Part shown: one piece after another, positions 1,537-25,911 of the stretch | Position numbering within the stretch: the first letter of the stretch is position 1 | Layout: every line of letters starts with the position of its first letter | IMG/VR virus record: IMGVR_UViG_3300032236_002285 | Location: 248,001-312,000 of that record | Direction: 5' to 3' (one strand) | DNA length: 64,000 nucleotides | Program-made: the position numbers and the translations under genes | The notes under the pieces: model-generated | Databases searched by the model: none | What the model was told of the DNA's origin: nothing | Seen by the model: only the letters and a program-made list of their open reading frames with translations

Positions 1537-1566
1537 AAAAGCCCTCTTAATGAGGGCTTTCTTTTT
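1535..1566. terminator. bidirectional intrinsic terminator
   Basis: AAAGCCCTC-ttaat-GAGGGCTTT flanked by A/T runs, between convergent genes. Confidence 0.8.
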
Positions 1567-4501
1567 ATCTTAATAAAGTGATATTACCTTTCTTATAGAA
1601 TCTCTTACCTTTATATGAATAAGCTTCTGCTTCATAAACATAAACACCAATCGGACAAGGCTCACCTTTAAATCTACCATCCCAGCCTTCATCTATATTC
1701 TTTGTTTCAAATACCATCTGACCCCATCTATTGAATATTCTAAAATGATCCAATGTAGCAATACCATGATGTTGTACTTTAATTATATCATTAGGTGAAG
1801 AACCCGGTGAAAAAGCATTAGCCACATCAATATAAGAATCATCTTCTACAATCACAACAACTGTATCAGTTACTTCACAACCATATTCTGTTTTAGCATT
1901 GACAGTATAAATAATACTAGATTGTACTGAAGTAATAGGTGATGATATACAAGGATTACTTAAACCATTAAGCGGAAACCAATTAAAGTATAAACAATTA
2001 CCACCTGGTGTAAATTGATATGATTCACCTGGATATAATCTAATCGTATCTGGTAGATTAATACTTGCTAAGTTTTTAATCTCTACATTTACAAGAGTAG
2101 AATCTATACAACCTGTTACTTCTTGTGCCACGACTAAATAAGTAAAATTACCTGGAGGCCATACTGTTGGCTCTTGAGCCGTATCACTACTAATATATAA
2201 ATTAGGGTACCAATGAATCCAAGTTAAAGGAGCGGCAAAAGTACTTAATAACTTAGTAGAATCTCCAGGACACAATGGTTTTATTCCTAAAGGTTGGAAA
2301 AAATTACTTGCAATTACCGTATAAGTCGCATCATCACTTCCATTACATCCGATTGGTGTTGTTACCGTTAAGTTAACATTTTGACTCAATACACTATTAA
2401 AGATTGGATTCGCTATTGATGGGTTATTAAACGCACCTGAAGGTGTCCAAGTGTAAGTGTAAAAAGGATATGTTCCTGGTGTTATTATTGGATCACATTG
2501 AATTGTATCACCATTACATATTGTTCTGTCCGCCCCAATAAACACAGTTGGATTTGGTTGAACATCAATATAGATTGTCTTAATTGAATCTTTACATCCT
2601 GTCTTGGTTGCTTTGATTGTATATAACCTTGAGGTGTCAGGTGTAATCGTTGGTGACATTATGTTTGGATTACTCACAAATAAATTAGGTGTCCATTTAT
2701 AAGTATAACGATTATCACCAGTTACATTTATGTTAACCGTATTACCCTTACAAATCGCAGTATCTTTATTGTTTAGTTTGAACCCTTGTAATACTTTTAT
2801 TTTCAATGTATCATAACGAGCACATTGATTTAATCCATTTGGAGTTATCTTAACAATATAAGTCGTATCTTTTGTAGGAGTACAAATTGGATTATTAATA
2901 GTATCCTTATTCAAAAAAGTTGAAGGAAACCATTTAACACTAAAAATTGTGTTAGCACTTGGAATTAAATTAGTATTCAATAATAACGAGTTATTGATAC
3001 AAGTTACAGTATCTGGTCCCAAATTGAATATCGGTATTGGTGATACTGTTACGGTAGTCGTATCTTTGTATTTATCACAAACACCCATCAAATTACTTGT
3101 AACCACATATTGAGTTGTTACAGTTGGATTAGCAAATGGAGCAGGACAATTAGTACAAGTTAATGAAGTCACAGGCGAACCACCAGGTAAAACTGACCAA
3201 GTGAATTGGGTACCACCAGCAACTTGCAACATAGCATAATCACCAATACATATTATTGGATATGTGGTGATATGAGTTTGTTGCCAAATATAAATTGGTA
3301 CAATAAATGTTTGTGATACAGGAATACCAGGAGGTGTACAAGTAGAATCTTTAATAGTAAATGTTAATATCCTTAAACCTGTATCAATTAATGAAGGAGA
3401 CCAATTAAAACAAGTTCTAACTGAATCTGTAAATGGATGAGTTGTAGTAAGTGTTGAACCAGGAGTGGTAATGCTATTATTAGATGATACAACTAATATA
3501 GCATTTGAATTAGTTGATTTGGCATCAAAACAAAATGATATTGTATGACCACCACATCCTTCTATTCTACCATTGTTCCAAGTACCACCTACAATAGATA
3601 CTGTATCTAAATTCAAGGTTGGTGGAGGGATGGTACAAGCTTTAACAATAATTTGTATATCTCTCATCACAGAACCTATTAACACACCATTTCTCCATTC
3701 TTTTACAAAAACAGTAACAACTGCAACTTGTTGAATGTTAGGTGTAAATGATATCTGTCCTGTTGTTGGACTAATAGTAAATGTATTGTTTGTACTTAAT
3801 GGGTTATTAGTTAAGTTATAGGTTACGGGTGGTGAAGTTGTGTTTGTAAATCCTATGTCTGAACCCGCAATAACATTACAACCGGCTGAACTTGTTTTTG
3901 GTTGAATTATAGAAAATGACATTGAATCGTTATTAGGGTCAACAGCGCCATTATTATAGTTGTATGGCATATTAACACAAAGATAAGGTACTGGTTTTAC
4001 GGTAAAATAAGGTGATGAATTACCTTGAGCATATTGATTGTTAAGCATTGCTTCAACATACATATTCTGAGTACCAGGTTGATATAAATTAGTAATGGCA
4101 TTATTTCTAGCACCTTCAGAAATATAAAATTTCCATGAATTACATCTTGAAGGCAGTGTGATTGTGTTTTCATATATCCACTCTCTATAACCAGGGAAGG
4201 TACCACCGTTACAAGTACTTGGGTAACCAGGACAACCGGTACTTACTTCTTGTCCATTGGTTGGACTTGTAATTTTACTGAGTGTTATGTTAGTACACCA
4301 ATTAGTACAAGGATTAAAACAATAACATAAAACATCACTGGGTTCTGGAATACCAGTACAATCTCTATAAAATTTGAATGTAATTTTATATGTTGAATCT
4401 GATATCCAACTATAAAGTAGTTCACCGCCAGCGCAGTGAGATGCTTTGCTCACGTTAGCAAAGGAAAGTAGCATAATTAATGCTAAGAGTAATCGTTTCA
4501 T
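1565..4501 (-). CDS. secreted T9SS type-B cargo (gliding motility-associated C-terminal domain, Ig/PKD-like repeats)
   Basis: Sec signal peptide; SHCAGGELLY..FYRDC N-terminus; C-terminal NAFSP..IFNRWGQMVF..GWDGRFKG..GVYVY..GNITLLR (CHU_C / type-B CTD). Confidence 0.85.
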   Translation of the reverse strand: MKRLLLALIMLLSFANVSKASHCAGGELLYSWISDSTYKITFKFYRDCTGIPEPSDVLCYCFNPCTNWCTNITLSKITSPTNGQEVSTGCPGYPSTCNGGTFPGYREWIYENTITLPSRCNSWKFYISEGARNNAITNLYQPGTQNMYVEAMLNNQYAQGNSSPYFTVKPVPYLCVNMPYNYNNGAVDPNNDSMSFSIIQPKTSSAGCNVIAGSDIGFTNTTSPPVTYNLTNNPLSTNNTFTISPTTGQISFTPNIQQVAVVTVFVKEWRNGVLIGSVMRDIQIIVKACTIPPPTLNLDTVSIVGGTWNNGRIEGCGGHTISFCFDAKSTNSNAILVVSSNNSITTPGSTLTTTHPFTDSVRTCFNWSPSLIDTGLRILTFTIKDSTCTPPGIPVSQTFIVPIYIWQQTHITTYPIICIGDYAMLQVAGGTQFTWSVLPGGSPVTSLTCTNCPAPFANPTVTTQYVVTSNLMGVCDKYKDTTTVTVSPIPIFNLGPDTVTCINNSLLLNTNLIPSANTIFSVKWFPSTFLNKDTINNPICTPTKDTTYIVKITPNGLNQCARYDTLKIKVLQGFKLNNKDTAICKGNTVNINVTGDNRYTYKWTPNLFVSNPNIMSPTITPDTSRLYTIKATKTGCKDSIKTIYIDVQPNPTVFIGADRTICNGDTIQCDPIITPGTYPFYTYTWTPSGAFNNPSIANPIFNSVLSQNVNLTVTTPIGCNGSDDATYTVIASNFFQPLGIKPLCPGDSTKLLSTFAAPLTWIHWYPNLYISSDTAQEPTVWPPGNFTYLVVAQEVTGCIDSTLVNVEIKNLASINLPDTIRLYPGESYQFTPGGNCLYFNWFPLNGLSNPCISSPITSVQSSIIYTVNAKTEYGCEVTDTVVVIVEDDSYIDVANAFSPGSSPNDIIKVQHHGIATLDHFRIFNRWGQMVFETKNIDEGWDGRFKGEPCPIGVYVYEAEAYSYKGKRFYKKGNITLLR

Positions 4502-7617: not shown

Positions 7618-7649
7618 ATGTATAACAAATTTTATAAAGGATAAAATCG

Positions 7650-7682
7650 AAACCCTCAGACAAAAAATCTGAGGGTTTTTTT
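7650..7682 (+). terminator. attenuator terminator upstream of tRNA array 1
   Basis: AAACCCTCAGA-caaaaaa-TCTGAGGGTTT plus T-run; 5' arm can instead pair with 7579-7591 (12 of 13 bp). Confidence 0.85.
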
Positions 7683-7697
7683 ATATGTAATAAATTT

Positions 7698-7769
7698 GGG
7701 GTGGTAGCTTAATGGTGAAGCAATCGGCTGTTAACCGATAGATTATAGGTTCGAATCCTATCCACCCCG
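7698..7769 (+). tRNA. tRNA-Asn(GTT)
   Basis: GGGGTGG/CCACCCC acceptor; ATCGG-CTGTTAA-CCGAT; TTCGAAT T-loop. Confidence 0.9.
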
Positions 7770-7780
7770 CAAAAATAAAC

Positions 7781-7865
7781 TGGTAGGTACCCGAGCGGTC
7801 TTCAGGGACTAGTCTGATATACTAGGTGAGAAATCACGACGTGGGTTCAAATCCCACCCTACCAA
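7781..7865 (+). tRNA. tRNA-Ile(GAT) with long variable arm
   Basis: TGGTAGG/CCTACCA; CTAGT-CTGATAT-ACTAG; variable hairpin GTGA-GAAA-TCAC. Confidence 0.8.
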
Positions 7866-7871
7866 CAACAT

Positions 7872-7943
7872 TCACTGGTAGCTCAGAGGCAGAGCAACCG
7901 CCTGTTAAGCGGTAGGTCGGGATATCGTAATTCACCCAGTGAG
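7872..7943 (+). tRNA. tRNA-Asn(GTT), irregular T-arm
   Basis: TCACTGG/CCAGTGA, G73; CCGC-CTGTTAA-GCGG; T-stem poorly paired. Confidence 0.75.
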
Positions 7944-7949
7944 CAAAAC

Positions 7950-8028
7950 GCCTCAGTAGCCGAGGTCGCCTTCTAAGCGACTAATCGTAACGGAACTGAA
8001 AATGTAGGTTCGAATCCTACCTGGGGTA
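7950..8028 (+). tRNA. atypical tRNA-Arg(TCT): D-arm nearly absent, long variable region
   Basis: GCCTCAG/CTGGGGT; GTCGC-CTTCTAA-GCGAC; GTAGG-TTCGAAT-CCTAC. Confidence 0.65.
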
Positions 8029-8083
8029 CAAAAAAAAGGGACACTAGTCTTATTAATATATAAGTAAAATGTAGGTTTGTATT

Positions 8084-8914
8084 ATGTTAGACTTTGAAAA
8101 TATTCAAAAAGACTTTGAAAGTGGTCTTTTTTATCAAAAAGATATACTAATTAAGTATAGTATATCAATTAAAAAATTAAGAACTTTTGTAAAAAAAGGT
8201 TTATTGAATAAAGAAAATTGGAAATTAAAAAAATATGAAGTAAAAAGAGAAACAAAAAAGTTAATATCAGAAGGTAGAAAAAAATGGTTGAAAGAAAATA
8301 CATCTAAACATCCTTGGAGAAATGGAAATAAATCTAAGCCTTGTGAGGAGTTTAAGAAATTCTTAAAAAGTAGGAATATTTTCTTTTTGGAAGAGGTTAT
8401 GATTTCAAAAGAAAGATTCTATTCGGTTGATATTTTAATACCTGAGTTCACTTCGGTTGTAGAAATTAATGGTAATCAACATTATAAATCTAATGGAGAA
8501 CTTAAAGATTACTATAGTGAAAGAAATAGTTTTATAAAAAATAAAGGATGGTCGATATATGAAGTACACTACTCAATTGTTTATAATTTAGAAATGTGTG
8601 ATTCTATTTTAGAAAATATTAAAAATAATAATAAAATCGATATACCATTTTATATAAAAAATAAGAAAGAAAAAAAATATAAGAATAGGGAAGAGTACTG
8701 GAATAAAAGAAAAATTAATAAATTGAATAGTTATAGTGAAAGATTAAATGAATTAAAAAACAGTAGTATAGATTTTAAAAAGATTGGATGGGTTAAACTA
8801 GCATCTGAGATATTAAAAGTTAAAAATGTAAATAAACTATTAAAAGAAATCGATCCAGAATTTTATAAAAATTGTTATAAAAGAAAACAAAATGCCGAGG
8901 TGGTGGAATGGTAG
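8084..8914 (+). CDS. DUF559/Vsr-like PD-(D/E)XK homing endonuclease inserted in tRNA array
   Basis: FYSVDILIP..VVEINGNQHY..RNSFI..GWSIYEVHY; Lys-rich; last 21 nt overlap tRNA-Leu. Confidence 0.7.
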   Translation: MLDFENIQKDFESGLFYQKDILIKYSISIKKLRTFVKKGLLNKENWKLKKYEVKRETKKLISEGRKKWLKENTSKHPWRNGNKSKPCEEFKKFLKSRNIFFLEEVMISKERFYSVDILIPEFTSVVEINGNQHYKSNGELKDYYSERNSFIKNKGWSIYEVHYSIVYNLEMCDSILENIKNNNKIDIPFYIKNKKEKKYKNREEYWNKRKINKLNSYSERLNELKNSSIDFKKIGWVKLASEILKVKNVNKLLKEIDPEFYKNCYKRKQNAEVVEW

Positions 8915-8976
8915 ACACGCTAGCCTTAGAAGCTAGTACCCGCAAGGGTGTGTGGGTTCGAGTCCCACCCTCGGTA
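8894..8976 (+). tRNA. tRNA-Leu(TAG)
   Basis: GCCGAGG/CCTCGGT; CTAGC-CTTAGAA-GCTAG; type II variable arm. Confidence 0.9.
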
Positions 8977-9001
8977 CTGAAGTGAAACGAAAGTTCACTA
9001 C
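8977..9001 (+). repeat. 25-nt tRNA-Leu 3' trailer, copy 1
   Basis: CTGAAGTGAAACGAAAGTTCACTAC, identical to 9810-9834; GAAA-capped hairpin. Confidence 0.9.
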
Positions 9002-9010
9002 AAAAAAAAT

Positions 9011-9096
9011 TGATAGGTTGCCGTAGTGGCCGAACGGTCCGGACTGTTAATCCGGTGACGAATAGTCCATCGTGGGTTCGAATCCCACCCTGTCAG
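9011..9096 (+). tRNA. tRNA-Asn(GTT) with long variable region
   Basis: TGATAGG/CCTGTCA, G73; CCGGA-CTGTTAA-TCCGG. Confidence 0.8.
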
Positions 9097-9103
9097 CAAA
9101 TAT

Positions 9104-9175
9104 AGTCCTGTAGCTTAATGGGAAAGCGCTTGCCTTACATGCAAGAGAGAGTCGGATCGTTACCGACCAGGACTA
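9104..9175 (+). tRNA. tRNA-Val(TAC)
   Basis: AGTCCTG/CAGGACT; CTTGC-CTTACAT-GCAAG; T-loop ATCGTTA. Confidence 0.85.
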
Positions 9176-9181
9176 CAAAAT

Positions 9182-9255
9182 TGGACTGTAGCTCATTTGG
9201 TTAGAGCGCCACGCTGATACCGTGGAGGTGGTCGGATCGTAACCGACCAGTCCAA
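9182..9255 (+). tRNA. tRNA-Ile(GAT)
   Basis: TGGACTG/CAGTCCA; CCACG-CTGATAC-CGTGG; T-loop ATCGTAA. Confidence 0.85.
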
Positions 9256-9261
9256 CAACAA

Positions 9262-9345
9262 GGTACTATGGCCGAGTGGAGTCTTTAAGACGGGAGGCAG
9301 TGGTCTGCAAAACTTCTCACACTGGTTCGAATCCAGTTAGTACCT
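9262..9345 (+). tRNA. tRNA-Cys(GCA) with expanded D-loop
   Basis: GGTACTA/TAGTACC, U73; loop CTGCAAA; extra GTCT-TTA-AGAC hairpin in the D-loop. Confidence 0.75.
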
Positions 9346-9350
9346 CAAAC

Positions 9351-9422
9351 GCTTCTTAAGCATTAATGGTGATGCACTAGTCTTGTAAACTAGAGAAATC
9401 GGATCGTTACCGGTAAGAAGCT
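9351..9422 (+). tRNA. tRNA-Thr(TGT)
   Basis: GCTTCTT/AAGAAGC; CTAGT-CTTGTAA-ACTAG. Confidence 0.85.
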
Positions 9423-9428
9423 CTAAAT

Positions 9429-9500
9429 TGTTCTGTAGCTCAATGGTAGAGCGCTTCTGTGACATGGAAGAGGTAGTCGGATCGTTACCGACCAGGACAA
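9429..9500 (+). tRNA. tRNA-Val(GAC)
   Basis: TGTTCTG/CAGGACA; CTTCT-GTGACAT-GGAAG. Confidence 0.8.
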
Positions 9501-9525
9501 CAAAATAATGGATGGTGATTAAGAG

Positions 9526-9598
9526 TGTTACTTCGTGAAATGGTATACACATTTGTCTTAAAAACAAACTTTTGAGGGTTCAAGTCCCTCAGTAAAAT
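9526..9598 (+). tRNA. degenerate tRNA-Leu(TAA)-like element lacking the variable arm
   Basis: Leu-type D-arm GTGAAATGGTATACAC; TTTGT-CTTAAAA-ACAAA; GAGGG-TTCAAGT-CCCTC; acceptor stem has a mismatch. Confidence 0.55.
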
Positions 9599-9625
9599 CA
9601 CTCTTTGAACTTTCCTCCATTATAT

Positions 9626-9709
9626 GCCGATGTGGCTCAGTGGCGACAGCACTGGTTTTGTAAACCAGAGACGAATAGTCCAACGGGGGTTCGAGTCCCT
9701 CCATCGGCT
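9626..9709 (+). tRNA. tRNA-Thr(TGT) with long variable region
   Basis: GCCGATG/CATCGGC; CTGGT-TTTGTAA-ACCAG. Confidence 0.85.
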
Positions 9710-9724
9710 CAAAATAAATCACCT

Positions 9725-9809
9725 GCCTGGGTGGTGGAACGGTAGACACGCTGGACTTAAAATCCAGTGGGCAGTAATGCCCGTGAGGGTTCGAGTCCCT
9801 CTCCAGGTA
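9725..9809 (+). tRNA. tRNA-Leu(TAA)
   Basis: GCCTGGG/TCCAGGT; CTGGA-CTTAAAA-TCCAG; type II arm. Confidence 0.9.
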
Positions 9810-9834
9810 CTGAAGTGAAACGAAAGTTCACTAC
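9810..9834 (+). repeat. 25-nt tRNA-Leu 3' trailer, copy 2
   Basis: Identical to 8977-9001. Confidence 0.9.
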
Positions 9835-9840
9835 TAAATT

Positions 9841-9911
9841 ATTGGGATAGTTTAATGGTAAATCGTGGGCCTGATATGCCCGTGTTCTTGGTTCGATTCC
9901 AGGTCTCAATA
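9841..9911 (+). tRNA. tRNA-Ile(GAT)
   Basis: ATTGGGA/TCTCAAT; TGGGC-CTGATAT-GCCCG. Confidence 0.8.
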
Positions 9912-9916
9912 CAAAC

Positions 9917-9988
9917 TTCGATATGGCCTATTGGTAGGGTGCAGGGGGACATGTTCCTGAGGACTTGGTTCGATTCCAGGTATCGATA
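9917..9988 (+). tRNA. tRNA-like element, anticodon undetermined (8-nt loop GGACATGT)
   Basis: Acceptor, D- and T-arms present (CTTGG-TTCGATT-CCAGG); non-canonical anticodon loop. Confidence 0.5.
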
Positions 9989-9995
9989 CAAACAT

Positions 9996-10082
9996 CGCGG
10001 GGTAGAGTAGAGGTCAAACTCACTGGGCTCATAACCCAGGGTTGCGCAAGTGACACGTCAGGTTCGAATCCTGCCCCCGCTA
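9996..10082 (+). tRNA. initiator-type tRNA-Met(CAT) with long variable arm
   Basis: Unpaired C1:U72; three consecutive G-C pairs in CTGGG-CTCATAA-CCCAG; extra GTTGC-GCAA-GTGAC hairpin. Confidence 0.8.
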
Positions 10083-10088
10083 CAACAA

Positions 10089-10161
10089 GCAGTCATCGTA
10101 TAGTAGGTGATTACACCACCTTGGTACGGTGGAGATTCCGGTTCGAATCCGGGTGATTGCT
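10089..10161 (+). tRNA. tRNA-Thr(GGT)
   Basis: GCAGTCA/TGATTGC; CCACC-TTGGTAC-GGTGG. Confidence 0.85.
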
Positions 10162-10166
10162 CAAAT

Positions 10167-10247
10167 GCCCAGATGGTGGAATGGTATACACGCCAGTCTA
10201 AGAAGCTGGTTCCTTCGGGATTGAGAGTTCGAGTCTCTCTCTGGGCA
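10167..10247 (+). tRNA. tRNA-Leu(AAG)
   Basis: GCCCAGA/TCTGGGC; CCAGT-CTAAGAA-GCTGG; Leu-type D-arm and variable arm. Confidence 0.85.
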
Positions 10248-10255
10248 CAACATAC

Positions 10256-10340
10256 GCCGGTGTGATCCGATGTGGTAATGGAGTTCGGCTCATATCCGAA
10301 TTGGTTTATCCTATTGCTGGTTCGACTCCAGCCACCGGTA
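10256..10340 (+). tRNA. tRNA-CAT (elongator Met or lysidine Ile2), long variable region
   Basis: GCCGGTG/CACCGGT; TTCGG-CTCATAT-CCGAA. Confidence 0.75.
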
Positions 10341-10345
10341 CAAAT

Positions 10346-10426
10346 GTCAGAATGGTGGAATGGTATACACGCTAGTTTCAAAAACTAGTGCCGAAAGGTA
10401 TGAGAGTTCAAATCTCTCTTCTGATA
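10346..10426 (+). tRNA. tRNA-Leu(CAA)
   Basis: GTCAGAA/TTCTGAT; CTAGT-TTCAAAA-ACTAG. Confidence 0.88.
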
Positions 10427-10448
10427 CTCGATAAAATAAAAAATAAAA

Positions 10449-10730
10449 ATGGAAAAGATTATCGACATCGTTAGAGATAACGTTGCAAGATTCGACTGGG
10501 CTTCTGAAGGAGTCCTCTACTACAAAGTAGAAACTGAAAAATATATCTATCACTTCCCAGTAGATATGAATAACAAAGAAGATGTGGGAACAGCTAATTT
10601 TGAATCAGAACATAAGGCTATAAATCTTATGAGATATTTAAGAAAAGCATCAGAAAACTTAGAAAAAATTAAAAACGATTCAGGTACGCCTGATTGGAAA
10701 AAGACATTAAGAGTTACACAAAAAGTATGA
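10449..10730 (+). CDS. hypothetical phage protein
   Basis: 93-aa ORF; its TGA overlaps the LeuRS ATG (ATGA). Confidence 0.6.
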   Translation: MEKIIDIVRDNVARFDWASEGVLYYKVETEKYIYHFPVDMNNKEDVGTANFESEHKAINLMRYLRKASENLEKIKNDSGTPDWKKTLRVTQKV

Positions 10731-11992
10731 AAGATGAAAAGTATATATGCGTTATGTTTCCTTACCCAAGTGGTTCGGGATTGCATGTAGGTCACTTTTA
10801 TAATTATGCTATAATTGATTCTTATTGTAGATACTTTAAATACAAAGGTCAACAAGTTTTTCAACCTTTTGGTTATGATGCCTTTGGTTTGCCGGCTGAA
10901 AACTATGCTAGAAAAGTAGGTCGTGATGCTAAAGATGTTACCTATGAAAACATCAGTCAATTTAGAAAACAGATGGAAAAGATGGATACCAACTATCAAG
11001 AAATGTTGGTAACATCTGATCCTTCTTATCAAAAATGGACACAATGGTTGTTTTTGAAATTGAAAGAACATGGCTTGGCTTATAAAAAAGATGGTGAAGT
11101 AAATTGGTGTCCTTCTTGTGAAACCGTATTGGCTCGTGAACAAGTTAAATCTGATTGTTGTGAAAGATGTTCAACTAAGGTAGAAATGAAAACAATGAAT
11201 CAGTGGTACTTTAAGATTACTGATTATAAAGAACGTTTGATTAAAAACTTGGATTGGATAGATTATCCAAAATCAACTATTAACGCGCAAAGAATGTGGT
11301 TGGAAAACTTGCACGATTGGTGTGTTTCTCGTCAAAGAAAATGGGGCTGTCCAATTCCAATAGAAGGTGAAACCGATACAATGGATACATTTGTAGATTC
11401 TTCATTTTACTATGTTAGATATTGTGATGCTACTAATGATAATGAATTGTGTGCTAAAGATAAATATAAACAAGTAGATGTTTATGTTGGTGGTAATGAA
11501 CACGCTTGTATGCACTTGATTTATGCTCGTTTTATTAATATGTTTTTGTATGATATTGGTGTTGTTTCAGAGGAAGAACCATTTAAGAAAGTTATACATC
11601 AAGGTATAATTTTGAACGAAGGTGAAAAAATGTCTAAAACAAAAGGTAATGTTATTAATCCAGATGATTATGACTCTGATGAATTGAGATTTTATATGAT
11701 GTTTATTGGTCATTATTTTGATGGTGGTTCTTGGTCTGACCAAAATATAGCTGGTATTAAAAGATTTATTAGTCGTTTTAAGGAGTGGATGTCAAGAGAA
11801 GGTTCTGATACTTTTGATATTGAATCATTTAAGAAAAAAATATTTAACTACACTGAGAGTTTTAAGTTTAATAAAGTTGTTAGTGAGTTTATGACAATAG
11901 TTAATCAAAATAGAACTAAAAACATAACACCTGAGATAAAAAAAGAATTGATTGAATTGATTAAGGTGTATATGCCTGGAATTAAAATTTAA
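10727..11992 (+). CDS. leuS: minimal leucyl-tRNA synthetase lacking the CP1 editing domain
   Basis: MFPYPSGSGLHVGH (HIGH), FGYDAFGLPAENYA, DWCVSRQRKWG, ETDTMDTFVDSSFYY, EKMSKTKGN; about 421 aa; start moved to ATG 10727. Confidence 0.9.
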   Translation: MKDEKYICVMFPYPSGSGLHVGHFYNYAIIDSYCRYFKYKGQQVFQPFGYDAFGLPAENYARKVGRDAKDVTYENISQFRKQMEKMDTNYQEMLVTSDPSYQKWTQWLFLKLKEHGLAYKKDGEVNWCPSCETVLAREQVKSDCCERCSTKVEMKTMNQWYFKITDYKERLIKNLDWIDYPKSTINAQRMWLENLHDWCVSRQRKWGCPIPIEGETDTMDTFVDSSFYYVRYCDATNDNELCAKDKYKQVDVYVGGNEHACMHLIYARFINMFLYDIGVVSEEEPFKKVIHQGIILNEGEKMSKTKGNVINPDDYDSDELRFYMMFIGHYFDGGSWSDQNIAGIKRFISRFKEWMSREGSDTFDIESFKKKIFNYTESFKFNKVVSEFMTIVNQNRTKNITPEIKKELIELIKVYMPGIKI

Positions 11993-11995
11993 ATT

Positions 11996-12024
11996 AAAAA
12001 AGTCCTCTATTTTAGAGGACTTTT
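11996..12024. terminator. bidirectional intrinsic terminator
   Basis: AAAAGTCCTCT-atttt-AGAGGACTTTT. Confidence 0.75.
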
Positions 12025-14834: not shown

Positions 14835-14866
14835 TAAATTTATATTAAAAAATAATATATATGGAC

Positions 14867-16486
14867 ATGAAATACATTAAAACTAGAAATAGATTTCTTG
14901 CTGAATCAAAAGGTGAAATGAGCGACAACGCTCTTCATACACTTGCGACTCATGATGATGGACAATCTCCTGATGTTCAAAAAAGTTTGGATGCACTTGA
15001 CGAGGTTTCTCCTAAAGGTAAAGTGGTAACTCGTTTTGCTCCTTCACCAACAGGATTTTTACATATCGGAGGTGTTCGTACAGCTCTTTACAACTACTTG
15101 TTTGCTAAAAAACACGGTGGTATCTTTTATGTTCGTATTGAAGATACTGACCAAAAACGTTTTGTAGGCGATGCTGAAAAATATATTCAAGACGCTTTAG
15201 AATGGTGTGGTATTGACCCAGATTATGCACCTTGGAAAGGTGGTCCTAATGGACCTTACCGCCAATCGGAAAGAGATTATTCTGGTCATATTCAAACTCT
15301 TTTAGATAAGGGTATGGCTTACTATGCTTTTGATACAGAAGATGATATGGTTAAAGTAAGAGCTGAAAATGCTCACTTTGCTTACGATACTAAAACTCGT
15401 ATGTCAATGAAGAACTCACTCTCTTTATCTAAAGAAGAAGTTGATGCACTTCTTGCTGCTAATACTCCATTTGTAATTCGCTTCAAAACACCAGAAAATA
15501 GAACTATCACCGTTAATGATGTAATTCGTGGTGAAGTTAGTTTGAATACAAATCAAACTGATGATAAAGTTTTGGTTAAATCAAATGGTATTCCTACATA
15601 TCATATGGCTAACGTATGTGACGACCACGATATGGGAACTACTCACGTTATTCGTGGTGAAGAATGGTTGCCTTCAACTCCACTTCACTTAATGTTATAT
15701 GAAGCATTTGGTTGGGAAGCTCCTACATTTGCTCACCTACCTCTAATTTTGAATCCTGATGGTAAAGGTAAGTTGTCTAAACGTAAAGCTTTAGCTTTAG
15801 GTATTCCAGCTTTCCCAATGGGTGGTGAAGGTGAAGATGATAAAGGTCAAAAAGTAAAGTATCTTGGTTTCAAAGATGAAGGTTTTGAACCACAAGCTAT
15901 GTTGAATTTCTTGGTGCTTTTAGGTTGGTCCCCAACAGATACTCAAGAACTTATGACTATGGCTGACATGATTTCTAAATTTGACTTAGCTCATGTTCAT
16001 AAGGCTGGTGCTCGTTTTGATGTTGAAAAAGCTAAACACTTTAATGCTCAACACTTGAACACTTATAGAAGTGATGAAGAAATTCTTTCACATATTGATA
16101 TGGGTGATACCTATCATTACTCACCAGAAAATCTTTCTAAGATTGTGGATATCTGTAAAAAGAGAGCAGTCTTTACTAAAGATTTACAAGCTGTTGCTGA
16201 TATCTTCTTTAAGCCAATTGTGATTAAAGAAACAGATGTTAAGTTATTAACTGATGATTACAAAAAAGTATTCTCAGTTTTTGTAACTAAGTCAATTGAT
16301 TGGACGGCTGAAACTATTAAACAAACAATTCACGACATTTGTCAAGAAATAGGTGTTAAAATGGGTAAGATAATGCCTGCTTTAAGATTGGCTATTGCTG
16401 GTGGATTACCAGGTCCAGATTTGGCAACAACAATGGAAATAATTGGTAGGGATGAAACCTTAATAAGAATTAAAAACACTTTATAA
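14867..16486 (+). CDS. gltX: glutamyl-tRNA synthetase with ~50-aa N-terminal extension carrying the capsid-targeting-like tag
   Basis: VVTRFAPSPTGFLHIGG, RIEDTD, HVIRGEEW, KLSKRK; starts MKYIKTRNRFLAES 5 nt after TAATATATA (14853-14861). Confidence 0.92.
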   Translation: MKYIKTRNRFLAESKGEMSDNALHTLATHDDGQSPDVQKSLDALDEVSPKGKVVTRFAPSPTGFLHIGGVRTALYNYLFAKKHGGIFYVRIEDTDQKRFVGDAEKYIQDALEWCGIDPDYAPWKGGPNGPYRQSERDYSGHIQTLLDKGMAYYAFDTEDDMVKVRAENAHFAYDTKTRMSMKNSLSLSKEEVDALLAANTPFVIRFKTPENRTITVNDVIRGEVSLNTNQTDDKVLVKSNGIPTYHMANVCDDHDMGTTHVIRGEEWLPSTPLHLMLYEAFGWEAPTFAHLPLILNPDGKGKLSKRKALALGIPAFPMGGEGEDDKGQKVKYLGFKDEGFEPQAMLNFLVLLGWSPTDTQELMTMADMISKFDLAHVHKAGARFDVEKAKHFNAQHLNTYRSDEEILSHIDMGDTYHYSPENLSKIVDICKKRAVFTKDLQAVADIFFKPIVIKETDVKLLTDDYKKVFSVFVTKSIDWTAETIKQTIHDICQEIGVKMGKIMPALRLAIAGGLPGPDLATTMEIIGRDETLIRIKNTL

Positions 16487-23334: not shown

Positions 23335-23408
23335 CGAGAAGTGACTAAGGTTTTAAGCACGCGCCGTCTGGAGCGGTGAGTTAGCAGGTTCGATTCCTGT
23401 CTTCTCGA
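23335..23408 (+). tRNA. tRNA-Pro(TGG)-like with atypical anticodon loop
   Basis: C1:G72 and A73 (CGAGAAG/CTTCTCG-A); CGCCG-TCTGGAG-CGGTG has C33 and A37. Confidence 0.6.
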
Positions 23409-23549: not shown

Positions 23550-23620
23550 GGACATATAGCTTAAAAGGAAAGAGTACCTCCAGTGGGAGGGGAGTCTTGG
23601 TTCAAGTCCAGGTATGTCCG
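23550..23620 (+). tRNA. tRNA-like element, anticodon undetermined (shortened loop)
   Basis: GGACATA/TATGTCC, G73; D- and T-arms intact; CCTCC-AGTG-GGAGG. Confidence 0.5.
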
Positions 23621-23626
23621 CAAAAA

Positions 23627-24050: not shown

Positions 24051-24121
24051 TGTCTGATGGTGTAGTGGTAGCACAAGGGTCTTTGATCCCCTTAGTTCAG
24101 GTCCGATTCCTGATCAGACAA
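24051..24121 (+). tRNA. tRNA-Gln(TTG)
   Basis: TGTCTGA/TCAGACA; loop CTTTGAT; T-loop TCCGATT. Confidence 0.8.
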
Positions 24122-24128
24122 CAAATAT

Positions 24129-24210
24129 TGAGGAATAGAATAATGGCAGTTCACCCGCCTTTGAAGCGGAGAGAGAAATCTCAGTGTAGGTTCGAGTCCT
24201 ACTTCCTCAA
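24129..24210 (+). tRNA. tRNA-Gln(TTG) with long variable arm
   Basis: TGAGGAA/TTCCTCA; CCGC-CTTTGAA-GCGG; GAGA-GAAA-TCTC arm. Confidence 0.82.
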
Positions 24211-24216
24211 CAAAAT

Positions 24217-24288
24217 TGCTTTATAGTATATGGGTTAACATATCTGTCTTTGAAACAGATGAACTTGGTTCGAGTCCAAGTGGAGCAA
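24217..24288 (+). tRNA. tRNA-Gln(TTG)
   Basis: TGCTTTA/TGGAGCA; TCTGT-CTTTGAA-ACAGA. Confidence 0.85.
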
Positions 24289-24306
24289 CAAAAAATAATA
24301 ACTACT

Positions 24307-25911
24307 ATGAATTTCATTGAAGAAAAAATAATTGAAAAAGGTAATCTTGATAAACTAACATTGAGATTTCCACCAGAACCAAATGGCTATTTACATATTG
24401 GTCACGCTAAATCCATTATCTTAAATTTTGGTTTAGCTGAAAAATATAATAGACCTTGTAACTTGAGATTTGATGATACTAACCCAACTACCGAAGATAC
24501 TCACTTTGTTGAGTCAATTATAAAAGATATAGAATGGTTAGGTTACAAACCCGCCAATATTTTCTATACATCTGATTATTTTGATTTTCTTTATGAATGT
24601 GCTATTACTTTAATTAAAAAAGGATTAGCTTATGTTGATGATTCAACATCAGAAGAAATTGCTAACTTAAAAGGAACACCAACTTCACCTGGTAAAGATT
24701 CACCTTATAAGTCAAGAAGTGTTGATGAAAATTTAGACCTATTTAATAGAATGAGATTAGGTGAATTTGTAGAAGGTTCTAAAATTCTTAGAGCTAATAT
24801 TGATATGACTTCTCCTAATATGATTTTAAGAGATCCAGTTCTTTATAGAATAATATCTAAGTCACACCACAGAACTGGTGATACTTGGAAGATTTATCCA
24901 ATGTATGACTTTGCTCATCCACTTTCAGATTATAAAGAAGGTATTACCGATTCTTTATGTACTTTAGAATTTGAAGTTCACAGACCTTTATATATGTGGG
25001 TTTTAGAAAATTGTGATTTAGAAAATCCGCTTCCAGAAGAAACTGAGTTTGCTCGTTTGAACATTGACTATACGGTTATGTCAAAGAGAAAATTAAAAAG
25101 ATTAGTTGAAGAAGGATTTGTAGATGGTTGGGATGATCCAAGAATGCCAACTATTTCTGGTTTAAGAAGAAGAGGTTTTACTCCAAATGCTATTAAAGAT
25201 TTTTGTGATAGAATTTCTGTTACAAGAAAAGATGGTATTGTTTCTTATTTACTTTTAGAAGAATGTTTAAGAACTGATTTGAACATAGTTACCAATAGAT
25301 TAATGGGTGTTATGGATCCAGTTAAGTTAGTTATTACTAATTGGGATAGCGGAACTGAAATGGTTGAAGTTGAAAATAATCCTGGTGATGAAAGTGCTGG
25401 TACAAGAATGATTCCTTTTAGTGGTGAACTATTTATTGAAAGAGAAGATTTCAGAGAAGAAGCTAATAATAAATTTCATAGATTGAAATTAGGTGGTGAA
25501 GTAAGATTAAAAGGCGCTTATGTTATTATGGCTAACGAAGTTATCAAAGATGAATTTGGAGAAATCACTGAGATTAGATGTACTTACGATCCTTTAACAA
25601 GATCAGGTATGTCTATTGAAAGAAAGATTAAAGGAACTATTCACTGGGTATCTGCTGAACACGGAGTTAGAATGAATGTAAATGAATATGATAGATTATT
25701 TAATGATGGATCACCAGATAAAAATGAAGATGATTTTATCAATTATATCAACCCAGATTCACTTATAATTAATGATAAGGCAATCTTTGAACCTCACGTT
25801 TTAAACGTCAAGGAACCAGTTCAAATGATGAGAAAAGGGTATTATATTTTAGATACTGATGGTAAAAGTTTCAATAAAACGGTAAGTTTAAAAGAAGGTT
25901 GGGTAGGTTAA
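24307..25911 (+). CDS. glnS: glutaminyl-tRNA synthetase
   Basis: RFPPEPNGYLHIGHAKS, RFDDTNP, IYPMYDFAH, SLCTLEF, VMSKRKL, GWDDPRMPTISGLRRRG; start moved to ATG 24307 (ORF-track start lies inside a tRNA). Confidence 0.95.
   Translation: MNFIEEKIIEKGNLDKLTLRFPPEPNGYLHIGHAKSIILNFGLAEKYNRPCNLRFDDTNPTTEDTHFVESIIKDIEWLGYKPANIFYTSDYFDFLYECAITLIKKGLAYVDDSTSEEIANLKGTPTSPGKDSPYKSRSVDENLDLFNRMRLGEFVEGSKILRANIDMTSPNMILRDPVLYRIISKSHHRTGDTWKIYPMYDFAHPLSDYKEGITDSLCTLEFEVHRPLYMWVLENCDLENPLPEETEFARLNIDYTVMSKRKLKRLVEEGFVDGWDDPRMPTISGLRRRGFTPNAIKDFCDRISVTRKDGIVSYLLLEECLRTDLNIVTNRLMGVMDPVKLVITNWDSGTEMVEVENNPGDESAGTRMIPFSGELFIEREDFREEANNKFHRLKLGGEVRLKGAYVIMANEVIKDEFGEITEIRCTYDPLTRSGMSIERKIKGTIHWVSAEHGVRMNVNEYDRLFNDGSPDKNEDDFINYINPDSLIINDKAIFEPHVLNVKEPVQMMRKGYYILDTDGKSFNKTVSLKEGWVG

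Follow-up and report, generated by a model that had tools for sequence, protein, structure and literature searches.

A predicted minimal, leucine-sparing leucyl-tRNA synthetase gene beside a tRNA array in a 476-kb freshwater phage

Can a leucyl-tRNA synthetase (LeuRS) of half the usual size, encoded by a phage just downstream of a leucine-rich tRNA array, still be a working enzyme, and if so, under what conditions would it be made? To address this question, we analyzed a 64,000-nucleotide window (positions 248,001 to 312,000 of the IMG/VR record IMGVR_UViG_3300032236_002285) belonging to a 476-kb phage genome. A first-pass annotation of the sequence alone had described a protein of about 421 aa in which the chain joins directly across the site of the CP1 editing domain, the second Zn and leucine-specific inserts and the C-terminal domain appear absent, and the HIGH and KMSKS-type motifs are intact. 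Our analysis confirms this observation. The features of the locus, in window coordinates, are as follows:

7649..7679, both strands: strong bidirectional hairpin terminator (12-bp stem) just upstream of the tRNA array, the likely 5' boundary of the tRNA-LeuRS block.
7698..10427, + strand: tRNA array with 18 ARAGORN calls and at least 20 by Rfam RF00005, including normal-length tRNAs and 83-88-nt tRNAs with a long variable arm for Ile, Asn, Thr and Met.
8894..8977, + strand: tRNA-Leu(UAG), type II, discriminator A73 (62 bits).
9725..9810, + strand: tRNA-Leu(UAA), type II, A73.
10167..10248, + strand: tRNA-Leu(AAG), type II, A73.
10346..10427, + strand: tRNA-Leu(CAA), the dedicated reader of UUG, which is the only Leu codon used by the LeuRS gene 300 nt downstream.
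10449..10730, + strand: 93-aa ORF whose stop overlaps the LeuRS ATG (ATGA), matching phrog_20427 (unknown function).
10727..11992, + strand: minimal LeuRS CDS, 421 aa, with all 19 Leu codons being TTG.
10784..10795, + strand: HIGH motif (HVGH, residues 20-23, equivalent to E. coli H49-H52), invariant in the family.
11078..11212, + strand: ZN1 or "CP1 hairpin" domain (residues 118-162, equivalent to E. coli 149-193), with four Cys ligands (C128, C131, C145, C148) and invariant E138 (E. coli E169) and R147 (E. coli R178).
11300..11311, + strand: junction L192-E193-N194-L195, where the 192-residue CP1 editing domain (E. coli 225-416) normally sits.
11627..11641, + strand: KMSKT (residues 301-305, equivalent to E. 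coli K619-S623), preceded by N-E-G-E (residues 297-300) in place of the leucine-specific domain, with G299 invariant.
11738..11965, + strand: predicted four-helix remnant of the anticodon-binding domain (residues 338-413, pLDDT above 90), basic in most family members (pI 8.9-10 in 24 of 29).
11998..12024, both strands: strong bidirectional hairpin terminator 6 nt after the stop codon.

The ORF runs from the ATG at 10727 to the TAA at 11990-11992 and is the last gene of a + strand block that begins with the tRNA array. In addition to the four solid tRNA-Leu calls, the array contains one weak 74-nt Leu(UAA)-like call. The segment spanning the CP1 site, NAQRMWLENLHDWCVSRQ, corresponds to residues 186-203, and an alignment with E. 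coli LeuRS (860 aa; residue numbers preceded by Ec below) places residue 192 at Ec224 and residue 195 at Ec417, so that the whole CP1 domain is replaced by two residues. Also absent are Ec2-31, Ec435-483 (the second Zn/CP insert), Ec574-617 (the leucine-specific domain), Ec771-860 (the last anticodon-domain helix plus the C-terminal domain) and two short anticodon-domain loops, amounting to 425 residues in all. The E. coli leuS sequence was taken by its coordinates, as a DNA search of E. coli genomes had been uninformative. The best family match is the bacterial LeuRS model TIGR00396 (E 8.6e-119), with 398 bits, below the equivalog cut-off of 548.4 bits because of the missing domains.

We next asked whether the residues required for catalysis have been kept. 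Across 29 family members, the equivalents of Ec Y43, H49, H52, D80, E169, R178, W223, G530, E532, H537, K619 and K622 are invariant, H533 (28/29), M536 (25/29) and Y540 (27/29) are nearly invariant, and S623 is S or T (residue roles from PMC9424281 and PMC13454842). In the phage protein, the leucine and ATP site residues correspond to Y13, D51, G256, E258, H259, M262, H263 and Y266, and H20, H23, K301, M302 and K304 of the signature motifs are invariant. The four Cys ligands of ZN1 are found in 27 of 29 sequences, whereas Ec W177, described as important for the ZN domain, is Glu or Asp here. The AlphaFold model has a pLDDT of 85.5 and a pTM of 0.85, and its best Foldseek match is Mycoplasma mobile LeuRS (PDB 3ziu, TMq 0.86). 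VIA-align gave Z scores of 32-34.5, with 416-419 residues aligned to Ec 28-772, Tt/Ng 28-790 and Mm 32-551. At the C-terminal end, the four-helix core aligns structurally up to Ec772, although Pfam Anticodon_1 does not score and two loops and the last helix are missing; the protein ends at the equivalent of Ec ~770-772, without a C-terminal domain.

Half the normal length and a score below the equivalog cut-off could point to a decaying remnant or an assembly artefact of a full-length leuS, but this possibility is effectively refuted. The same architecture is present in more than 120 protein clusters of 412-440 aa (apart from a few shorter, apparently partial, entries and one of 472 aa) at 72-84% identity, many of them on 400-780-kb phage contigs, and in 45 independent IMG/VR viral loci, with dN/dS of 0.05-0.18. 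The fold is predicted with confidence, a clean terminator follows the stop codon, and a second sample holds 84% of the gene's sampled words. No RNA run holds the sequence; it was found only in DNA runs from one study, plus small shares in lake and freshwater metagenomes. A scan of genome contigs found only one family member in a cellular bin, on a 2.9-kb contig; as its peptide pattern biased it towards Gemmatimonadota LeuRS, it says nothing about the origin of the gene. We do not claim that this is the smallest LeuRS in nature, as the ESM Atlas lists still shorter, mostly viral, LeuRS-like clusters that may be fragments.

Because deletion of the C-terminal domain abolishes aminoacylation in Thermus thermophilus and E. 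coli LeuRS and nearly abolishes it in P. horikoshii LeuRS (PMC3561953), the published evidence argues against activity without this domain, and one alternative is that the core is catalytically competent but needs a partner, with binding of the tRNA-Leu elbow and variable arm supplied in trans by a non-homologous phage protein or by a host protein such as host LeuRS or another tRNA-binding factor. The naturally split LeuRS of A. aeolicus, with the C-terminal domain on a separate subunit (PMC3561953), and the 93-aa ORF overlapping the LeuRS start codon would be consistent with this view. Supply of the missing domains by another phage gene had been named beforehand as the outcome that would overturn the annotation, and it was not found. 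Pfam searches of the whole 476-kb genome for PF13603, PF08264, PF01588 and PF04073 (CP1, tRNA_bind and YbaK modules among them) returned nothing, so that the genome holds no Anticodon_1 homologue either. Custom profiles of the E. coli-defined C-terminal domain, CP1 and second insert (ZN2), built from 26 bacterial LeuRS, found nothing at E<=10 in the six-frame translation, although the positive controls worked and the ZN2 profile does detect the LeuRS of a 735-kb phage. The genome contains no other class Ia paralogue. The 93-aa ORF has no Pfam hit and no homologue beside LeuRS in the related loci labelled L002-L009, and no neighbour is conserved beside LeuRS in seven related loci, so it is not a conserved subunit. 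Moreover, hundreds of phage LeuRS sequences in two divergent lineages all end at the same helix, which suggests a self-sufficient solution. We regard the need for a partner as unlikely.

A second alternative, also unlikely, is a leucine-activating enzyme with a non-canonical acceptor or role, such as Leu-AMP formation for another acceptor, leucine sensing or sequestration of tRNA-Leu. Three modules that contact tRNA (CP1, the leucine-specific domain and the C-terminal domain) are lost, the equivalog cut-off is not reached, and aaRS paralogues with new functions are common (PMC9437257). Against this, the residues that handle the tRNA CCA end (E138 and R147 of ZN1 and S/T305 of KMSKS) are kept and invariant, the predicted anticodon-domain core is also kept, and the gene is repeatedly linked to tRNA-Leu arrays. 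Here, LeuRS follows tRNA-Leu(CAA) inside a block bracketed by two strong terminators; five tRNA-Leu genes precede the divergent LeuRS of the 735-kb phage, with similar arrays in the relatives' loci L101, L117, L126, L139 and L140; and the phage GlnRS directly follows the tRNA-Gln array. However, tRNA-Leu adjacency within 3 kb is absent in most relatives. The phage tRNA-Leu genes look like ordinary bacterial type II tRNA-Leu with A73, and their anticodons match the Leu codon usage of the phage.

The codon usage of the gene itself provides a further line of evidence. All 19 Leu codons are TTG, against 12% genome-wide (P = 4e-18), which makes this gene the sole such outlier among 430 ORFs. Horizontal transfer as the cause is rejected, because codon choice for the other amino acids, apart from Phe, matches the genome. 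Leucine content is also low, with 19 Leu in 421 residues (4.5%) against 7.8% genome-wide (P 0.005), while E. coli LeuRS has 35 Leu in the same 420 aligned columns. The bias is conserved despite saturated dS and recurs in relatives: single G-ending Leu codons (TTG or CTG) dominate in 25 of the 40 relatives analyzed, whereas 15 show no dominant G-ending Leu codon, so the bias is not universal, and in GC-rich relatives CTG is also common in the background. A quick tree of the relatives, which left out three duplicate or near-duplicate rows (L110, L118 and L138), was not used for any claim about the order of events. A related phage LeuRS lineage of 504-647 aa is essentially leucine-free, with 0 Leu in 40 of 47 clusters and 1-2 in the rest, against 7.5-8% in the nearest cellular LeuRS. 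In the phage under study, GlnRS has 1 Gln in 534 residues, and a HisRS-like ORF shows the same cognate avoidance. Avoidance of Leu codons makes most sense if the product relieves a shortage of Leu-tRNA.

These data might also reflect a resistant replacement LeuRS, a special case of an active enzyme, in which the phage or a host defence disables host LeuRS or most tRNA-Leu isoacceptors and the stripped enzyme is insensitive and restores leucylation; it would then have to be made with no Leu codons, or only with codons read by C34 tRNAs. The complete absence of Leu in most of the sister lineage and, where it occurs, the exclusive use of G-ending codons read by C34 tRNAs, which lack a modified wobble U, are compatible with this view. 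Self-immunity LeuRS copies exist in an antibiotic producer (PMC5059758), and benzoxaborole-type inhibitors act through the CP1 editing site (titles of PDB entries 4ari and 3zjt), a site that this protein lacks. Nevertheless, no inhibitor gene, nuclease or target was identified here, the simpler capacity-limitation model explains the same data, and the cognate avoidance of GlnRS and the HisRS-like ORF would require several parallel attacks. We consider this reading improbable.

The explanation we favor, with a probability of roughly 60%, is that the gene encodes a working, editing-less, minimal LeuRS of a huge phage that probably infects Bacteroidota in freshwater, consisting of the class Ia Rossmann core, the ZN1 hairpin and a four-helix stub of the anticodon-binding domain. 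In this view, the enzyme activates leucine and transfers it to the phage's own full set of type II tRNA-Leu (UAA, CAA, UAG, AAG), and probably to host tRNA-Leu as well, adding leucylation capacity when the replicating phage floods the cell with tRNA-Leu and with TTA-rich messages. Without CP1 or any trans-editing factor it could not clear mischarged tRNA-Leu and is expected to be less accurate than the host enzyme. The gene would be built for translation when Leu-tRNA-Leu is limiting, with few leucines, each spelled with UUG, a codon that is rare in the phage and has a dedicated C34 reader encoded directly upstream; the sister lineage would reach the same end by removing leucine altogether. 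What the analysis establishes is the architecture, the intact catalytic residues, conservation, purifying selection, the absence of the missing modules elsewhere in the genome, the linkage to tRNA-Leu and the codon and cognate-residue bias, while catalytic activity, expression, tRNA charging without the C-terminal domain, lower fidelity and the rationale of synthesis under shortage are inferences.

The interpretation offered by the first-pass annotation is thus partly supported. Its near-minimal natural synthetase agrees with sequence, predicted structure, family conservation and purifying selection; its suggestion of an error-prone enzyme is plausible, since no cis or trans editing module exists; and its suggestion of specificity for the four or five phage tRNA-Leu variants has no support either way. 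It missed that an anticodon-domain core is retained in the model, with only the last helix and the C-terminal domain gone besides the two loops, that the protein belongs to a large conserved phage family rather than being a one-off, and that the gene uses TTG alone for Leu while related phage LeuRS genes avoid leucine altogether.

If the enzyme is active, this 421-aa protein would set a much lower natural size for a LeuRS than the 637-residue chain of M. mobile, would contradict the deletion studies in which the C-terminal domain is indispensable, and so would point to a different way of holding tRNA-Leu; it would also be a compact, editing-free scaffold for synthetase engineering. The codon and composition signature can be read as a sequence-level indication of when these enzymes are needed, turning the open question of why phages carry synthetases into a testable one, as the enzymes appear to be selected to be made under shortage of their own product, and it offers cognate-residue depletion as a simple genomic screen for functionally important viral translation genes. 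A broader and more tentative possibility, somewhat less likely than not, is that huge phages carry a self-starting leucylation module that charges tRNA-Leu without the C-terminal, editing or leucine-specific domains, through a tRNA-binding mode not seen in cellular LeuRS, from a gene purged of leucine or confined to one low-demand codon so that it can be expressed when Leu-tRNA-Leu is nearly absent. The same principle would apply to other phage aaRS, such as the GlnRS with a single Gln, and would represent a general and previously undescribed design rule of viral translation take-over. Within the literature we could search, no description of truncated phage LeuRS or of cognate-free aaRS was found.

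Among known systems, huge phages carry up to 15 aaRS and up to 67 tRNAs, proposed to charge phage tRNA variants (Al-Shayeb et al. 2020, PMC7162821), and the 634-kb genome LR745206 holds an 82.5%-identical copy of this gene; the main text of that study does not describe domain loss or cognate-residue avoidance. The cognate bias of amino-acid biosynthetic enzymes (Alves and Savageau 2005; PMC4209129) follows the same concept, in that enzymes needed to relieve a shortage of an amino acid contain little of it, which avoids a synthesis deadlock, but it was described for biosynthetic pathways of cells and not for phage aaRS, where it reaches 0 of about 540 residues and, in the present gene, takes the form of a single-codon monopoly. 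The leucine-free lineage of 504-647 aa found here (for example the 735-kb phage LR756501, the loci L009 and L139-L141, and the proteins P0138-P0184) also lacks the leucine-specific and C-terminal domains, ends at the same helix, lacks CP1 in most members and is often preceded by tRNA-Leu arrays. It shares only 32% identity, however, keeps the Cys-rich second insert and, in some members, the N-terminal extension or a ~110-residue mini-CP1, and has 0 Leu rather than 19 TTG-encoded Leu; its member L141 scores above the TIGR00396 cut-off (625 bits).

M. mobile LeuRS is the best structural match (Z 32, 419 residues aligned) and is a natural bacterial-type LeuRS without CP1, experimentally active (kcat about 1.8-2.0 s-1) and editing-deficient, in which a Gly-containing tetrapeptide, GKDG, substitutes for the leucine-specific domain (PMC3643597), at the place taken by N-E-G-E in the phage protein. 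It keeps a nonapeptide reported to compensate for CP1 (PMC3643597, PMC3561953), most of the second insert, the full anticodon-binding domain and a further ~86 residues beyond the end of the phage protein (model residue 421 = Mm 551 of 637), whereas the phage protein has a 2-residue linker (E193-N194) and no counterpart of Mm273-312 or of anything beyond Mm551. Bit scores show no special sequence affinity to the M. mobile enzyme (T. thermophilus 285, M. mobile 282, E. coli 259). Finally, the engineered LeuRS urzyme (PMC9026127) shows that a heavily pared class I LeuRS core can retain activation and acylation chemistry, but it is a laboratory construct of ~120-130 residues with low activity, while the phage protein is a natural 421-aa predicted enzyme with ZN1 and a predicted anticodon-domain core.

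We examined the open reading frame at window 10727-11992 (+), which comprises 421 codons, begins with an ATG overlapping the stop of a 93-aa ORF, and ends in TAA, with a 12-bp hairpin terminator following 6 nt later. Among NCBIfam models, bacterial LeuRS (TIGR00396) ranked far above all others, with an E value of 8.6e-119 and 398 bits, although this score is below the 548-bit equivalog cut-off, while Pfam recognized only class I catalytic-domain models. Sequence comparison with solved structures returned the LeuRS of T. thermophilus, M. mobile and E. coli as the best hits. The match is broken exactly where the first-pass annotation, which had described a half-size LeuRS without an editing domain, placed the gap. 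To map the missing segments, we aligned the protein with E. coli LeuRS (taken from NC_000913.3) using MAFFT. E. coli residues 2-31, 225-416 (CP1), 435-483 (the second insert, called Zn2 in PMC9424281), 574-617 (the leucine-specific domain, given as A571-M617 in PMC3643597), 691-704, 736-743 and 771-860 have no counterpart in the phage protein, which amounts to 425 residues in all. The initial observation is confirmed.

In contrast to these losses, every residue that we could take from the literature as acting in leucine activation or in handling the CCA end is present, with a single exception. In E. coli numbering, Y43, H49, H52, D80, E169, R178, W223, G530, E532, H537, K619 and K622 are invariant across 29 family members, H533 (28/29), M536 (25/29) and Y540 (27/29) are nearly invariant, and S623 is Ser or Thr. 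Only W177 differs, being Glu or Asp here (roles from PMC9424281 and PMC13454842). The ZN1 hairpin keeps four Cys ligands, whereas two family members, P0044 and P0081, located on 709-kb and 519-kb contigs, have lost all four ZN1 cysteines (D..D...A..S pattern) but keep E138 and R147, which parallels the zinc-free ZN domains of Neisseria and Pseudomonas LeuRS described in PMC13454842. The place of the leucine-specific domain is taken by N-E-G-E with an invariant Gly, recalling the GKDG peptide that functionally replaces that domain in M. mobile LeuRS (PMC3643597).

An AlphaFold2 model built on the family alignment is confident (pLDDT 85.5, pTM 0.85) and ends in four predicted helices, residues 338-413, at pLDDT above 90. 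Foldseek ranked M. mobile LeuRS first (TMq 0.86), and VIA-align superposed 416-419 of the 421 residues on E. coli LeuRS 28-772, T. thermophilus and N. gonorrhoeae LeuRS 28-790, and M. mobile LeuRS 32-551, with Z values of 32-34.5 and an rmsd of 2.4-2.9 Å. In this model, the anticodon-binding domain appears to survive as a compact core, and what is missing at the C-terminus is its last helix and the C-terminal domain.

The window lies in a virus record of 476,236 bp with 30% G+C, estimated to be 97% complete. A word-based protein search returned more than 120 clusters at 72-84% identity, nearly all of 412-440 aa, many of which sit on contigs of 400-780 kb, and IMG/VR gave 45 loci down to 52% identity. 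The 634-kb genome LR745206 of Al-Shayeb et al. carries an 82.5%-identical copy. The 90%-identity cluster of family member P0004, which holds this LeuRS, also lists members of 167-234 aa named '8-oxo-dGTP diphosphatase' by JGI, probably a clustering or fused-call artefact. Pairwise dN/dS is 0.05-0.18, with dS near or beyond saturation.

We next asked whether the missing domains could be supplied by another phage gene, a condition set beforehand as one that would refute the first-pass reading. The genome contains no other class Ia synthetase, and Pfam searches detected no CP1 (PF13603), Anticodon_1, tRNA_bind or YbaK-type domain in it. Profile HMMs of the E. coli-defined C-terminal region, CP1 and second insert, built from 26 bacterial LeuRS, found nothing at E<=10 in its six-frame translation, although the second-insert profile does recognize the LeuRS of a 735-kb phage. 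The overlapping 93-aa ORF and all other neighbors are not conserved beside LeuRS in related loci. Supply of the domains by another phage gene is therefore not supported for any recognizable homologue, while a non-homologous partner remains as an unlikely rival explanation.

The gene closes a + strand block bracketed by two strong bidirectional terminators, and the block starts with at least 20 tRNA genes. The features of the window and of the wider genome that bear on this context are as follows.

1565-4501 (-): 978-aa protein ending in a CHU_C type IX secretion sorting domain (E 1.8e-12)
7649-7679: strong bidirectional terminator
7781-7866, 9011-9097, 9626-9710, 9997-10081, 10256-10341 and 24129-24211, with genome positions 219872-220138 and 231626-231712: ten tRNAs of 83-88 nt with a long variable arm
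7872-7943, 7950-8028 and 23335-23408: three tRNA-like genes found by Rfam and missed by ARAGORN
8084-8914 (+): 276-aa ORF inside the tRNA array
9917-9989 and 23550-23621: two odd tRNAs called by ARAGORN
10727-11992 (+): LeuRS
11998-12024: strong bidirectional terminator
14861-16486: full-size GluRS
24051-24289: tRNA-Gln genes
24307-25911: GlnRS
Genome contig G000:C1, 220433-221065 (positions 1306-1938 of the extracted locus L013): 210-aa HisRS-like catalytic core

Four genes of the array are canonical type II tRNA-Leu with A73, carrying the anticodons UAG, UAA, AAG and CAA, and the CAA gene lies directly upstream of the LeuRS region. A further tRNA-Leu(UAA) lies elsewhere in the genome. These anticodons match the Leu codon usage of the phage: TTA 56%, CTT 19%, TTG 12%, CTA 10%, and CTC plus CTG 2%. 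The GlnRS directly follows three tRNA-Gln genes. In the 735-kb phage, five tRNA-Leu genes directly precede its own divergent LeuRS, and similar arrays occur next to several relatives. The 276-aa ORF has no Pfam match and only a weak match to phrog_503 (unknown function), and overlaps the start of tRNA-Leu(UAG) by about 20 nt.

The ten 83-88-nt tRNAs have a base-paired long variable arm (class II shape) but carry anticodons for Ile, Asn, Thr, Met (2), Gln, Lys (3) and Glu. Most sit beside a normal tRNA of 72-76 nt with the same anticodon, and in every case where the comparison is clear they share its discriminator base, so that they look like class I tRNAs with an added arm rather than recoded Leu/Ser/Tyr bodies. 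The six in the window score 41-60 bits on Rfam tRNA, and we found no report of such tRNAs in the literature searched. Of the two odd ARAGORN calls, one has a 4-nt anticodon 'acat' and one a 2-nt anticodon 'gt'; Rfam does not report the 'acat' one. Regarding the host, the CHU_C domain, which is typical of Bacteroidota, points to that phylum, as does the Bacteroidetes host prediction for the largest Mahaphage genomes (PMC7162821). Relatives occur in lake and freshwater metagenomes.

Analysis of codon usage revealed an unexpected feature: the gene spares leucine. All 19 Leu codons are TTG, and with TTG at 12.2% of Leu codons genome-wide, the binomial probability is 4e-18. Among 430 ORFs, this gene is the only such outlier, the next highest TTG fraction being 0.46. 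Codon choice for every other amino acid is ordinary, except for Phe, which is spelled only TTT (25/25, against 75% TTT in the genome; p about 8e-4). The bias survives saturated synonymous divergence, since the genes at the related loci L002, L003, L004, L005 and L006 have 19/19, 20/20, 16/21, 23/29 and 20/24 TTG, respectively, against local backgrounds of 12-25%. In 40 relatives, a single G-ending codon holds at least 74% of the Leu codons in 25 genes; it is usually TTG, but it is CTG in the related loci L101 (19/20 against a background of 8%), L115 and L116. The other 15 show no such dominance, and on a quick tree the biased clades are interleaved with unbiased ones. Leu content is also low, at 4.5% against 7.8% genome-wide (P 0.005), and E. 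coli LeuRS has 35 Leu in the same 420 aligned columns, against 19 here.

The divergent LeuRS of the 735-kb phage (504 aa, 32% identity) has no CP1, leucine-specific or C-terminal domain, ends at the same helix, and contains no leucine at all. Its relatives at loci L139, L140 and L141 also have none, although the flanking genes have 7.5-7.9% Leu. A second protein search returned 47 clusters of this 504-647-aa lineage (proteins P0138-P0184; examples at L009:3998-5509, L139:2986-4545 and L141:2908-4536), of which 40 have 0 Leu and 7 have 1-2, whereas the nearest cellular LeuRS (Campylobacterota, ~816 aa) have 7.5-8%. All lack the C-terminal domain, and some 645-647-aa members keep a shrunken CP1. 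The 542-aa form scores 625 bits on TIGR00396, above the cut-off, and its predicted fold is confident (pLDDT 78, pTM 0.81).

A similar depletion was observed in other synthetases of this phage. The full-size GlnRS (668 bits on TIGR00440) has one Gln in 534 residues, against 3.0% genome-wide; the first 19 codons of a longer TTG-start ORF overlap the last tRNA-Gln gene and hold four more Gln, so the ATG at 24307 is the likely start. The HisRS-like core (PF13393, E 2.7e-26; TIGR00442, 158 bits, below cut-off) lacks the insertion and anticodon-binding domains and has no His residue, and lies about 1.6 kb downstream of tRNA-His, amid the Lys, Arg and Ser tRNA genes, as a second half-size synthetase in this phage. 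In contrast, the GluRS is not depleted.

Avoidance of an enzyme's own amino acid is the signature predicted by the cognate-bias hypothesis for enzymes that must be made to relieve a shortage of that amino acid (PMC4209129). Applied here, this hypothesis implies that these phage synthetases are selected to be translatable when their own product, the charged cognate tRNA, is scarce, which in turn argues that the product matters, in other words that they are working synthetases. The choice of a rare, G-ending codon with a dedicated C34 reader is what the selective-charging argument, reportedly made by Elf et al. 2003, would favor, as isoacceptors in low demand stay charged longest. In this genome, TTG (976 codons, one CAA gene plus possible wobble reading by UAA) and CTA/CTG (921 codons, one UAG gene) carry the lowest demand per tRNA gene, which is consistent with the idea but not uniquely so.

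We therefore favor an active, editing-less LeuRS that adds leucylation capacity for the phage tRNA-Leu set, with a fidelity probably lower than that of the host enzyme. While the architecture, its conservation and the codon and residue bias were observed directly, the leucylation activity, the reduced fidelity and the selection for translation under shortage are inferred from sequence and predicted structure. The main obstacle is biochemical precedent, since deletion of the C-terminal domain abolishes aminoacylation in T. thermophilus and E. coli LeuRS (PMC3561953), and, in addition, the CP1 bridge here is only two residues. Against that, two phage lineages comprising hundreds of sequences under purifying selection all lack that domain. 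Besides a non-homologous partner, two further rivals were weighed and considered unlikely: a non-tRNA role, and a resistant replacement enzyme made after host leucylation is disabled.

Huge-phage synthetases are known in general (PMC7162821), and public pipelines already label the proteins described here 'leucyl-tRNA synthetase', but we found no description of this architecture, or of cognate-free phage synthetases, in the literature searched. The protein is structurally closest to M. mobile LeuRS and is inferred to work like it. Nevertheless, it departs from both the canonical bacterial LeuRS equivalog and the M. mobile type in several features, having no C-terminal domain, no second insert and a shorter linker. 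Compared with these variations on a known enzyme, the leucine-sparing design is the more surprising element.
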